Source: Geosiphon pyriformis uo1 (lineage: Eukaryota > Fungi > Glomeromycota). From it: 35,172 nucleotides of DNA. Shown piece after piece: positions 3,167-28,259 of this stretch (within the stretch, counting starts at the first letter, position 1; the number at the start of each line of letters is the position of its first letter). The stretch lies in assembly GCA_016748015.1 (NCBI GenBank), contig JAAOMT010000262.1, forward strand, positions 4,079-39,250, in the 5' to 3' direction. Under the pieces are notes generated by a model that was not told the DNA's origin, made no database searches, and saw only the letters and a program-made list of their open reading frames with translations. Both the position numbers and the translations under genes were made by a program.

Positions 3167-4160
3167 NNNNNNNNNNNNNNNNNNNNNNNNNNNNNNNNNN
3201 NNNNNNNNNNNNNNNNNNNNNNNNNNNNNNNNNNNNNNNNNNNNNNNNNNNNNNNNNNNNNNNNNNNNNNNNNNNNNNNNNNNNNNNNNNNNNNNNNNNN
3301 NNNNNNNNNNNNNNNNNNNNNNNNNNNNNNNNNNNNNNNNNNNNNNNNNNNNNNNNNNNNNNNNNNNNNNNNNNNNNNNNNNNNNNNNNNNNNNNNNNNN
3401 NNNNNNNNNNNNNNNNNNNNNNNNNNNNNNNNNNNNNNNNNNNNNNNNNNNNNNNNNNNNNNNNNNNNNNNNNNNNNNNNNNNNNNNNNNNNNNNNNNNN
3501 NNNNNNNNNNNNNNNNNNNNNNNNNNNNNNNNNNNNNNNNNNNNNNNNNNNNNNNNNNNNNNNNNNNNNNNNNNNNNNNNNNNNNNNNNNNNNNNNNNNN
3601 NNNNNNNNNNNNNNNNNNNNNNNNNNNNNNNNNNNNNNNNNNNNNNNNNNNNNNNNNNNNNNNNNNNNNNNNNNNNNNNNNNNNNNNNNNNNNNNNNNNN
3701 NNNNNNNNNNNNNNNNNNNNNNNNNNNNNNNNNNNNNNNNNNNNNNNNNNNNNNNNNNNNNNNNNNNNNNNNNNNNNNNNNNNNNNNNNNNNNNNNNNNN
3801 NNNNNNNNNNNNNNNNNNNNNNNNNNNNNNNNNNNNNNNNNNNNNNNNNNNNNNNNNNNNNNNNNNNNNNNNNNNNNNNNNNNNNNNNNNNNNNNNNNNN
3901 NNNNNNNNNNNNNNNNNNNNNNNNNNNNNNNNNNNNNNNNNNNNNNNNNNNNNNNNNNNNNNNNNNNNNNNNNNNNNNNNNNNNNNNNNNNNNNNNNNNN
4001 NNNNNNNNNNNNNNNNNNNNNNNNNNNNNNNNNNNNNNNNNNNNNNNNNNNNNNNNNNNNNNNNNNNNNNNNNNNNNNNNNNNNNNNNNNNNNNNNNNNN
4101 NNNNNNNNNNNNNNNNNNNNNNNNNNNNNNNNNNNNNNNNNNNNNNNNNNNNNNNNNNNN

Positions 4161-6907: not shown

Positions 6908-7707
6908 NNNNNNNNNNNNNNNNNNNNNNNNNNNNNNNNNNNNNNNNNNNNNNNNNNNNNNNNNNNNNNNNNNNNNNNNNNNNNNNNNNNNNNNNNNNNN
7001 NNNNNNNNNNNNNNNNNNNNNNNNNNNNNNNNNNNNNNNNNNNNNNNNNNNNNNNNNNNNNNNNNNNNNNNNNNNNNNNNNNNNNNNNNNNNNNNNNNNN
7101 NNNNNNNNNNNNNNNNNNNNNNNNNNNNNNNNNNNNNNNNNNNNNNNNNNNNNNNNNNNNNNNNNNNNNNNNNNNNNNNNNNNNNNNNNNNNNNNNNNNN
7201 NNNNNNNNNNNNNNNNNNNNNNNNNNNNNNNNNNNNNNNNNNNNNNNNNNNNNNNNNNNNNNNNNNNNNNNNNNNNNNNNNNNNNNNNNNNNNNNNNNNN
7301 NNNNNNNNNNNNNNNNNNNNNNNNNNNNNNNNNNNNNNNNNNNNNNNNNNNNNNNNNNNNNNNNNNNNNNNNNNNNNNNNNNNNNNNNNNNNNNNNNNNN
7401 NNNNNNNNNNNNNNNNNNNNNNNNNNNNNNNNNNNNNNNNNNNNNNNNNNNNNNNNNNNNNNNNNNNNNNNNNNNNNNNNNNNNNNNNNNNNNNNNNNNN
7501 NNNNNNNNNNNNNNNNNNNNNNNNNNNNNNNNNNNNNNNNNNNNNNNNNNNNNNNNNNNNNNNNNNNNNNNNNNNNNNNNNNNNNNNNNNNNNNNNNNNN
7601 NNNNNNNNNNNNNNNNNNNNNNNNNNNNNNNNNNNNNNNNNNNNNNNNNNNNNNNNNNNNNNNNNNNNNNNNNNNNNNNNNNNNNNNNNNNNNNNNNNNN
7701 NNNNNNN

Positions 7708-26732: not shown

Positions 26733-27543
26733 TTGCAAGAAAACTATATTTATATTTAAATTTCAAGCTTAATAAAACTTGGACAAAAAAAAAATTCTTT
26801 TAAGAAATTATATTTTTTAAAATCAATAATATAGAATATACAAACTAAAAAAATTTATTTTAAATATATTGATGCATTTTTTTTCATTATTAACTTTTTG
26901 TAAAATTTAAATCCAAAATCTAAACTTTTTTTTAAAAACCAAAATTTCAATTTATATAATTAATATATATATAATTTTGGTAATTTCTTTATCATGATTA
27001 AATATAACTTGTTAAAATTTTTATTATCAAATTTAATCTTTTTATTATAATTATTATAAAATTGATTGTCACATGATTATATATAAAAATTTATGTATCC
27101 ATAATAATATCACCTTTCACAGTTCCATTTAAAGAAAGTTCAACCAAAAATATAGTGTTTCAAACACTTAAAAATCAAATTAGTGGAAAAAATCCTTGTT
27201 TTCTGATTGCGCTTAAAACCTTGTTTCACAAATACAATAATTTTTTAATATTAATTGCCCAAAAAAGTTTTTCTGAATAGATGCCCTTAAAAGGTGGATT
27301 TAATGGAAAATAATTTTTAATTTTTAATCAACACAAAGAGGGTTTTCAAACTATAATATTTTAAATGGGAAAGAAACTATTTTTTACTAATCATTCACTA
27401 AAAAGCTAGGCCTTTAAAAAAGATAGACATATTATAAAAAGAAATTAATCAAAATTCTTAAATTCTAATAAATAATTATAGCTCATTATAATGAATCAGC
27501 CTCAACTTATTTCCTTGCAGCAAGTGACTATTAGTTGCCATAT

Positions 27544-28028
27544 TAGGCATCCTATAACAAAACCAGACAAAGTGAACATGAGAATAAAAAATCTCCTTCT
27601 TTACCATAATCATTCATCTCGAATGGAGTCACGACTGAATGGAGTGCGTTTGCAAGGTTATACCTTGTGTGATTGGCATCGCGACGAAAAGGAAAGTGGT
27701 TGGTGGTCAGACGAGAGGATGATGAAGGCCCCGGAAAGAGCAATGTTCACCGCCGCGTTTGCATTTCTTCCTCTTGTGGTGTGGTTGATCCTCCTTGCTG
27801 GGCACCGGGGATGAACGCATTCGACGGCCCCAACGTTATGCCCAGCTCTGAGGTAAAAGTAATATTTCCTATATGACTAATTCCAGCTATCTAGGTGACA
27901 GCCGGGATAACAGCAATGGTATTTTGAGTGCTGGGAGGAAGCCAGCGAAAAGATAAAGATAATGCCTTTTCAATTATCAAAGCAACGATTGCTTGTGTTC
28001 ACTTTGTCTGGTTTTTTGCAGCACGTCC
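27544..28028 (-). mobile_element. Non-autonomous TIR element carrying a Fanzor/TnpB-like C-terminal remnant
   Basis: Perfect 20-bp inverted repeats AAAACCAGACAAAGTGAACA (27559-27578) and TGTTCACTTTGTCTGGTTTT (27996-28015), extending outward imperfectly by ~14 nt. The interior is markedly GC-richer than the flanks. Confidence 0.75.
27552..27837 (-). pseudogene. Fanzor1-like nuclease C-terminal fragment (zinc-finger half plus RuvC-III)
   Basis: Frame starting at 27837 reads NVGAVECVHPRCPARRINHTTRGRNANAAVNIALSGAFIILSSDHQPL, then a frameshift, then PFRRDANHTRYNL... This resembles the GAVECxxxxC....RD.NAA.NI...G.......LPPF.R ending I recall for fungal Fanzor1 proteins. The catalytic D reads N. 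Confidence 0.7.
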
Positions 28029-28259
28029 CATAAAAGTGATGAATGAAAAGTTAATCATATTTCCCATTATATTATTGATAAATGAAATAAAGTGTTAAAT
28101 ATACATAGAGGACAAAGAGGAAAAAACACAAGGATAAAAATATCGATCCTAGCATTTTTAGTTAGAAAATAAATCTTCATTTATCTTTGATTAATAAAAA
28201 GAATTTTTATTCGACATAATGGACTATTATTTTAAAAGTTCCATTTAAATGGAACTCAA

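Follow-up and report, generated by a model that had tools for sequence, protein, structure and literature searches.

A decayed, probably Fanzor-derived mini-transposon in Geosiphon pyriformis, with DUF7869 elements as its candidate movers

The closest described counterpart of the element studied here is ghost Spu-1 of the chytrid Spizellomyces punctatus, which spans about 550 nt between inverted repeats and gives rise to functional omega-RNAs (Saito et al. 2023, PMC10432273). These ghost omega-RNAs function with the nuclease SpuFz1, and the existence of ghost Fanzor copies in a chytrid, to which a preliminary description of our locus had appealed, is borne out by that study (PMC10432273). In the Fanzor1 systems of insect viruses, the repeat and the duplication belong to the scaffold (bioRxiv 2023.08.09.552727). 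Here, we analyze a short, GC-rich element between inverted repeats in a stretch of 35,172 nucleotides (the window) from contig JAAOMT010000262.1 of Geosiphon pyriformis uo1 (Glomeromycota). The locus, at positions 27541-28032 of the window, is very likely a dead copy of a non-autonomous mini-transposon without an open reading frame (ORF), resembling both ghost elements and miniature inverted-repeat transposable elements (MITEs), and derived from an internally deleted Fanzor1 transposon. To our knowledge, descriptions of ghost Fanzor loci have until now been confined to a chytrid and a few protists and animals; the same architecture would here be found in an early-diverging relative of the arbuscular mycorrhizal fungi, tied to a Fanzor1 lineage with proteins of about 1,000 amino acids.

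The element is repeated many times in the genome of its own host. When a 485-bp stretch of the locus was searched against this genome (128 Mb in 792 contigs), at least 55 DNA matches were obtained, with 70-94% identity and nearly all of them 300-540 bp long, which argues that the element is not a product of chance. The preliminary description had proposed a search for sibling copies and longer related elements, and both were recovered, the longer relatives being the decayed Fanzor copies L061-L065. Counted with up to three mismatches, the 25-nt core of the repeat occurs 153 times genome-wide, as compared to 0 times for the reversed control. The majority consensus of 12 copies and their flanks, aligned with MAFFT, is 555 bp long with a GC content of 0.47 and 23 CpG dinucleotides; it is bounded by terminal inverted repeats of 39-41 nt that start TATGGGGCGTGCTGCAAC..., and single copies are 88-95% identical to it. 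About 20-25 copies are fairly complete, and the remainder are fragments, with the 5' half present at 22 genome places and the 3' half at 40-55. As in non-autonomous DNA transposons, the many copies contain just short, broken frames and have no coding capacity of their own. The sibling copies translate as ECVHPRCPARRINHTTRGRDANAAVNIALSG...PPFRRDANHTRYNLANELLSVVTPELVPRDSIRDE followed by a stop, or in a fuller reading as ECVHPRCPARRINHTTRGRDANAAVNIALSGASIILSSDHQPLPPFRRDANHTRYNLANELLSVVTPELVPRDSIRDE and a stop, and the proteins retrieved by the family-profile search include Geosiphon pyriformis entries identical to translated genome copies, in agreement with this species as the host.

One of the sibling copies (L014; C784:167906-168127) encodes the last ~60 residues of the gene model KAG9284042.1 (P0004), a bZIP/Aft1-like transcription factor of 716 amino acids with the tail ...RINRITRERDANAAVNIALLG...FIQDE. 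This tail represents either exonization of the mini-element or a chimeric gene prediction.

In the window, the copy is seen as an island with a GC content of 0.446 (500-nt bin 27501-28000), surrounded by neighboring bins of about 0.21-0.30 in the composition profile; the window overall is at about 0.2-0.3 and the genome at about 25% GC. Both the GC-rich island and the perfect 20-nt inverted repeats around it (27559-27578 and 27996-28015), as previously described, were confirmed. The BLAST limits of the mini-element matches are 27540-28035, and we moved the ends from 27544-28028 to 27541-28032 (492 bp) because the 12-copy alignment gives repeats of 39-41 nt. Identity between the window copy and the majority consensus is 94.7%, and their alignment contains 63 gap columns. 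On the minus strand, positions 27661-27840 translate as HNVGAVECVHPRCPARRINHTTRGRNANAAVNIALSG..., another frame beside this one gives ...HFPFRRDANHTRYNLAN..., and a neighboring frame carries the remnant on as ...PFRRDANHTRYNLAN.... The frames within the copy are short and interrupted, and the surroundings are AT-rich and non-coding. The features of the copy are as follows, with 5' and 3' given in the sense of the Fanzor remnant.

27541-28032, minus strand (the sense of the Fanzor remnant): whole mini-element, delimited by the 12-copy MAFFT alignment and the BLAST limits; copy of the ~555-bp family read as ghost- or MITE-like
27541-27579, minus strand: 3' terminal inverted repeat, holding the perfect core 27559-27578; outer part decayed, with G>A and C>T substitutions predominating
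27995-28032, minus strand: 5' terminal inverted repeat, holding the perfect core 27996-28015
27846-27994, minus strand: 5' half, specific to the mini-element and non-coding; found at 22 genome places, every one a mini-element copy
27607-27845, minus strand: remnant of the 3' end of the Fanzor ORF (about the last 80 codons), split by deletions of 2 nt and 22 nt
27802-27819, minus strand: second cysteine pair of the zinc finger, ECVHPRC, aligned with ...GAVECVHPRCP... of P0001 and P0007 and with CTNPNC of SpuFz1
27742-27768, minus strand: RuvC-III motif RNANAAVNI, with the catalytic Asp codon changed to Asn at 27763-27765 (siblings RDANAAVNI)
27541-27660, minus strand: remnant of the predicted omega-RNA scaffold region (ORF tail, 3' untranslated region and repeat), placed by analogy with SpuFz1

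The origin of the 3' half was traced with a profile of sibling-copy peptides (A1), which was searched against 1.84 billion representative proteins. The search retrieved 52 proteins, of which the best (P0001, 198 amino acids, E = 4e-37) comes from a soil metagenome contig. This contig, L067 (2,235 bp, GC content 0.45), holds one frame of ~650 codons with just two stops, which contains GTDPG (RuvC-I), NEYNTSKTCPFC, ECVHPRCP and RGRDANAAANIALSG, with the zinc finger and RuvC-III included, and is succeeded by a stop, a 3' untranslated region (UTR) of ~55 nt and the terminal repeat of the family. The final 337 bp of this contig, repeat included, are 85% identical to a mini-element copy. A decayed full-length copy on a contig of Jimgerdemannia flammicorona (L070) matches with its 3' end at 79-83% identity, and fragments are present in Entrophospora, Ambispora, Funneliformis and Morchella. 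In Geosiphon itself, the long decayed copies L061-L065 read ...NEYNTSKICSYCF...ECVHPRCPARR...RGRD.NAA.NI and have the 3' UTR and the 3' repeat in common with the mini-element. The same 3' repeat terminates L061-L064, the metagenome contigs L067 and L074, and the Jimgerdemannia copy. Homology starts at about position 27824 in DNA comparisons with the long copies and at about residue 115 in the protein comparison with P0001. As judged from these alignments, the ~300-bp 3' half of the mini-element and the 3' terminus of a Fanzor element are colinear; the ORF-less mini-element between inverted repeats that had been proposed is thus a multi-copy family with longer, Fanzor-bearing relatives.

Sequence profiles and a structural model identify the parent protein as a Fanzor1-type nuclease of about 1,000 amino acids. 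GTDPG, NEYNTSKxCxFC and ECVHPxC are present in both L067 and L074. The latter has ORFs of 571 and 447 amino acids with one stop between them, which is located in a 75-nt interval of the form GTAAGA...ATAG, and a 75-nt interval (GTAAGA/GTAATA...ATAG) occurs at the same place in both contigs (L074:705-3764, L067:959-1033) and contains the sole in-frame stop that they share. We removed the GT...AG interval with a script and asked whether the frame stays open, and each exon or ORF piece served as a query of its own in the searches; the interval is probably an intron. Since the sole stop of L074 lies within it, an essentially intact gene for a Fanzor1 of ~1,000 amino acids is probable in some soil fungus, and intact genes of this lineage are probably represented in soil metagenomes.

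Searched against the Protein Data Bank (PDB), a family profile of 19 sequences (A3) matched SpuFz1 (8gkh, E = 5.5e-6), PpFz1 (E = 3.5e-3) and Cas12f (E = 2e-3), and the TnpB-like protein L79 of mimivirus was also found. An AlphaFold (AF2) model of the C-terminal 447 amino acids of L074 reached a predicted local distance difference test (pLDDT) score of 69.7, with a core above 85, and in a Foldseek search with this model SpuFz, PpFz and GtFz were the leading hits (E = 4e-6 to 2e-3), followed by just Cas12, Fanzor2 and TnpB. The Pfam family PF07282 reaches the parent-family proteins below threshold only. Pfam gave no hit for the 60-amino-acid peptide of the window and nothing relevant for any A1 peptide, and no relevant structure was retrieved from the PDB when profile A1, P0001 or the N-terminal part of L067 was the query. 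A profile search with the translated window peptide had been suggested as a check; the peptide alone failed in Pfam, while the family profile succeeded. With the P0001 match, the SpuFz1 match and the Foldseek result for L074 in hand, the Fanzor/TnpB C-terminus that had been noticed on the minus strand is real. The window copy has neither a complete RuvC fold, with the RuvC-I Asp and RuvC-II, nor a full zinc finger, and retains the second cysteine pair and RuvC-III only.

When compared with the consensus, the 3' ~340 bp, including the non-coding part, were 75-85% identical among Geosiphon, Jimgerdemannia (Endogonales), Entrophospora, Ambispora, Morchella (Ascomycota) and soil metagenome contigs (L067, L070, L071, L072, L069 and L074), and the Fanzor element has a GC content of ~0.47 within a host of ~0.25. 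This identity across fungi and the contrast in base composition suggest either horizontal spread or strong constraint at the nucleotide level.

The window copy is a decayed relic without functional consequence, for which no sign of activity was found. Deletions of 22 nt (at about 27630/27631) and about 27 nt (at about 27591/27592) set it apart from the family, as do the loss of 11 nt near 27862 and of 2 nt within the ORF remnant. The two deletions on the 3' side are real, since a contig built from publicly available reads of this organism equals 27300-27723 without any difference, and the flanks were confirmed likewise. The RuvC-III motif reads RDANAAVNI or RDANAAANI in the siblings and parents, and the catalytic aspartate is absent from the window copy. 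The cognate Fanzors found are broken. The N-terminal 343 amino acids of L067 matched 11 genome places, each with 8-14 stops except for one short fragment with a single stop; P0001 matched 40 places, where the long matches contain 3-6 stops and the matches free of stops represent short remnants of the mini-element. An intact cognate Fanzor was not found among these matches in the Geosiphon genome.

The terminal repeats are also found around larger elements. In the Geosiphon genome, they pair in plus/minus orientation at distances of 3.7-8.5 kb, well above chance frequency, and the intervals between them contain no Fanzor matches. DUF7869 is a domain of unknown function with a wide distribution among eukaryotes. 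At least 17 of the 35 matches to this domain in the genome lie within 5 kb of a listed repeat, and four are located inside plus/minus pairs (on C648, C633, C702 and C618). The repeat-bounded elements of 5-8.5 kb and the foreign loci with repeats are placed as follows.

C633:293675-302244: repeat-bounded element enclosing DUF7869 (PF25273)
C702:46156-53983: repeat-bounded element enclosing DUF7869 (PF25273)
C648:282813-289984: repeat-bounded element enclosing DUF7869 (PF25273)
C618:6528-12867: repeat-bounded element enclosing DUF7869 (PF25273)
L073:880-2690: foreign DUF7869 locus with repeat-like 21-mer (metagenome)
L075:5359-9610: foreign DUF7869 locus with repeat (Ambispora)

The right repeat follows the domain end at a distance of 1,980 bp in C633 and 1,983 bp in C702, and some DUF7869 loci have open frames of more than 1,000 amino acids. 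In the metagenome contig L073, a DUF7869 gene starts 6 bp from a repeat-like 21-mer and adjoins a Fanzor gene of the parent family of the mini-element. The Ambispora contig L075 carries a 42-nt repeat that matches the majority consensus and is 95% identical to the repeat of the mini-element copy L002; it precedes a DUF7869 gene of the same orientation by 2.6 kb, and a second, diverged repeat-like stretch is located directly before the gene. The DUF7869 consensus contains the DDE-like motifs ...QDEA..., CDNAGGQNKNN and PGHTKFKCD. As is characteristic of MITEs, the mini-element has its terminal repeats in common with a larger coding element, and we infer from coordinates and two foreign contigs that the 5-8.5-kb DUF7869 elements are its candidate autonomous partners.

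Other DUF7869 results concern single proteins and neighbors. PF09820, a neighbor of DUF7869 in Ambispora, was rejected as a candidate and has no link to elements of the Geosiphon genome. The Geosiphon DUF7869 protein P0170 could not be placed on any contig. Another DUF7869 protein, P0142, is annotated in a metagenome-assembled genome of ‘Candidatus Moeniiplasma glomeromycotorum’, an endobacterium of Glomeromycota, and could reflect contamination with host DNA or transfer from the fungus.

If the window copy were instead an active ghost locus, a minus-strand omega-RNA scaffold would run to position 27541, with the flank as guide, and would arm an intact Fanzor elsewhere in the genome. We consider this very unlikely. 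It is true that the omega-RNAs of ghost Spu-1 work with SpuFz1 (PMC10432273), that the family retains the ORF tail, 3' UTR and repeat where Fanzor1 omega-RNAs map, and that these parts are strikingly conserved between fungi in the alignment. Across fungi, third-position identity is raised to 0.83/0.79 in the last 29 codons as compared to ~0.5-0.75 upstream, although these are small numbers; two stem-loops are common to L067 and L070; and the genome has at least 118 PF07282 matches. However, the 3' arms of both conserved stem-loops fall in the two private deletions of the window copy, and the folds are no more stable than those of shuffled sequences (z-scores of -0.91 for the window 3' end, -0.08 for L067 and -1.47 for L070). 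RNAalifold on the mini-element copies returned 0 compensatory pairs, and a weak consensus when other fungi were added, and covariation by explicit pair counting was 0.089 as compared to 0.084 after shuffling, with 133 of 500 shuffles as high. The 3' UTR and 3' repeat diverge among the Geosiphon copies no slower than the remainder (0.113 and 0.161 substitutions per site, as compared to 0.060 in the 5' half), and Rfam gave no match on the whole window. The cognate copies found are all broken, and none of the 20 best PF07282 loci has an open frame of more than 272 amino acids, a test that is limited by introns. Trans-acting guides for intact Fanzors, as previously suggested for this locus, are therefore unsupported for the window copy, because the cognate Fanzors are broken, the stem-loop arms are deleted, and signals of structure and extra conservation are lacking. 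Omega-RNA coding is plausible as an ancestral property of the family, by analogy with Spu-1, and lost in the window copy.

The PF07282 matches in the genome come from other Fanzor families, with L041 (C710:847503-850658; ...VVSIDPGIHTPFT...NEAYTSKTCSWCG...DRDENGA...) as an example of such a relic. The top PF07282 loci were rejected as parents of the mini-element, as they belong to these other families and have no long open frames.

A number of results weigh against the derivation from an internally deleted Fanzor1 transposon or against the roles proposed for its RNA and its mover. Neither the long Geosiphon Fanzor copies nor L067, L070 or L073-L075 contain a match to the 5' half, and when this half was aligned by Smith-Waterman with the sequence upstream of L070, the score did not exceed that of shuffles. 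No full-length Fanzor element carrying both repeats was recovered, with L067, L073 and L074 ending at contig edges. The 5' repeat was not found in the long Geosiphon copies, in L069 or, within 4 kb, in L070, and a solo 5' fragment (L066 on C439) has no Fanzor-like coding downstream. Target-site duplications of TA and TATA are both compatible with the flanks in the 12-copy alignment. Omega-RNA coding by the family is argued by analogy, the case for DUF7869 as a transposase consists of the motifs and a weak Pfam hit to DDE_Tnp_ISAZ013 (E = 0.053), and the AF2 model of a DUF7869 protein (pLDDT 50.7) was too poor for a fold search. The link between DUF7869 and the mini-element in Geosiphon is suggested by coordinates and by two foreign contigs.

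An alternative is a chimeric origin, in which a short non-autonomous derivative of a DUF7869 transposon, consisting of the repeats and the 5' half, would have captured a fragment of a neighboring Fanzor element, in place of a single internal deletion. The ~160 bp from the 5' repeat to the Fanzor junction are confined to mini-element copies, at 22 places, and have no counterpart in any Fanzor-bearing sequence examined; the repeats are common to the DUF7869 elements, and Fanzor and DUF7869 elements adjoin in L073. We nevertheless hold a chimera to be unlikely. In the 3' half, the Fanzor ORF, 3' UTR and 3' repeat succeed one another unbroken, exactly as they do in the long Fanzor copies, so that the 3' end is native to the Fanzor element, and the 5' half is likewise absent from the places of the large elements. 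The earlier view of an internally deleted Fanzor transposon that kept both ends accordingly stands for the repeats and the 3' end, and is tentative for the 5' half, which matches no longer element and nothing outside the mini-element family. That the stretch is part of a host gene, as an exon or regulatory module rather than selfish DNA, we regard as extremely improbable: one sibling copy does supply the last 60 residues of the bZIP model P0004, but the window frames are short and broken in AT-rich non-coding surroundings, and the copies differ from the consensus by ~5-12% and do not conserve the frame.

The flanks of the copies were compared in the same alignment. Most copies have the 5' flank TTTA|TA, in which TTTA is a candidate TAM, and TA is found on the 3' side in about half of them; the window copy has TT and TG. 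Aligning the copies had been proposed as a way of defining both the ends and the target-site duplication. The ends were fixed in this manner by the 39-41-nt repeats, while a TA or TATA duplication is inseparable from the repeat, because both are palindromic and continuous with the repeat ends.

Under the preferred derivation by internal deletion, a Fanzor1 transposon with terminal inverted repeats would have lost nearly its whole interior and founded the mini-element family. The parts kept would be the two repeats of ~40 nt, ~160 bp adjoining the 5' repeat and a terminal ~300 bp at the 3' side, the latter made up of ~80 Fanzor codons, which cover RuvC-III, the C-terminal tail and one half of the zinc finger, together with the 3' UTR and its adjacent repeat. 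The family may have been moved in trans by the DDE-like DUF7869 transposase of the 5-8.5-kb elements with the same repeats. The retained 3' part may once have coded for an omega-RNA scaffold, as in ghost Spu-1, and each copy could have paired this scaffold with its own flank as guide for as long as an active Fanzor was present, a capacity since lost in the window copy. More tentatively, and possible rather than probable in our judgment, these elements would form a three-part mobile system spreading among soil fungi (Glomeromycota, Endogonales, Morchella), made up of a 5-8.5-kb transposon with a DDE-like DUF7869 transposase, a Fanzor1 passenger of ~1,000 amino acids with the same repeats and omega-RNA ghosts of ~555 bp; as long as the system is active, every ghost copy would be protected or re-copied by RNA-guided cleavage of its empty site. 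If true, the system would provide the first named transposase partner of a repeat-bounded Fanzor1 and a function for DUF7869. Two leads are worth following, the DUF7869 partner and the question of how widely, and whether horizontally, the Fanzor lineage has spread among soil fungi.

Elsewhere in the window, the genes include Sel1 repeats and a class-3 lipase, in keeping with a glomeromycotan host. Runs of N with a GC content of 0.000 (window 3500-4000 and 7000-7500, as well as L064:1-1060) are masked rather than biological.

Nothing linking Fanzor with MITEs, Glomeromycota or DUF7869 was found in the literature searched. Compared with ghost Spu-1 (PMC10432273), the Geosiphon element is likewise ORF-less, multi-copy and ~550 nt from repeat to repeat, with inverted repeats like those of Fanzor loci; it has a 555-bp consensus, repeats of 39-41 nt and the same 3' repeat on Fanzor-bearing copies, and it keeps the part adjoining the 3' repeat, in which the Spu-1 omega-RNA lies. 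Unlike ghost Spu-1, it retains ~80 Fanzor codons, its repeats are 39-41 nt rather than 30 nt, and its parent Fanzor family has ~1,000 amino acids as compared to ~630 for Spu-1. Also in contrast to Spu-1, an intact cognate Fanzor was not found in the Geosiphon genome, and the copies decay neutrally, the omega-RNA region being no better conserved than the remainder; the omega-RNAs of ghost Spu-1 are functional, those of the Geosiphon family putative.

MITEs, too, are short, non-coding, repeat-bounded and multi-copy, with repeats common to a larger protein-coding element. The family differs from them in having a copy number in the tens, an interior from a passenger nuclease gene rather than a transposase gene, and a candidate target duplication (TA or TATA) that merges with the palindromic repeat ends. 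With SPu-1 and other repeat-bounded Fanzor1 elements (Bao and Jurka 2013, PMC3627910; Jiang et al. 2023, PMC10530073; Yoon et al. 2023, bioRxiv 2023.08.09.552727), the parent has in common a single Fanzor1 gene in a non-autonomous element, a possible TA-type target duplication and, by analogy, an omega-RNA (reRNA) that overlaps the 3' end of the ORF and the repeat, whereas the window holds a deletion derivative only. The carrier superfamily would apparently be the uncharacterized DUF7869, outside the Mariner, Helitron, Sola, MuDr, IS4-like, hAT and CMC superfamilies listed for those elements. A candidate transposase partner with the same repeats is thus present in Geosiphon, and since none was found for Spu-1 (PMC10432273), the DUF7869 family is a concrete candidate for the enzyme behind the movement of repeat-bounded Fanzors. 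Together, the transposase element, the Fanzor element and the ghost offer a tractable trio for asking what a Fanzor does for transposons.

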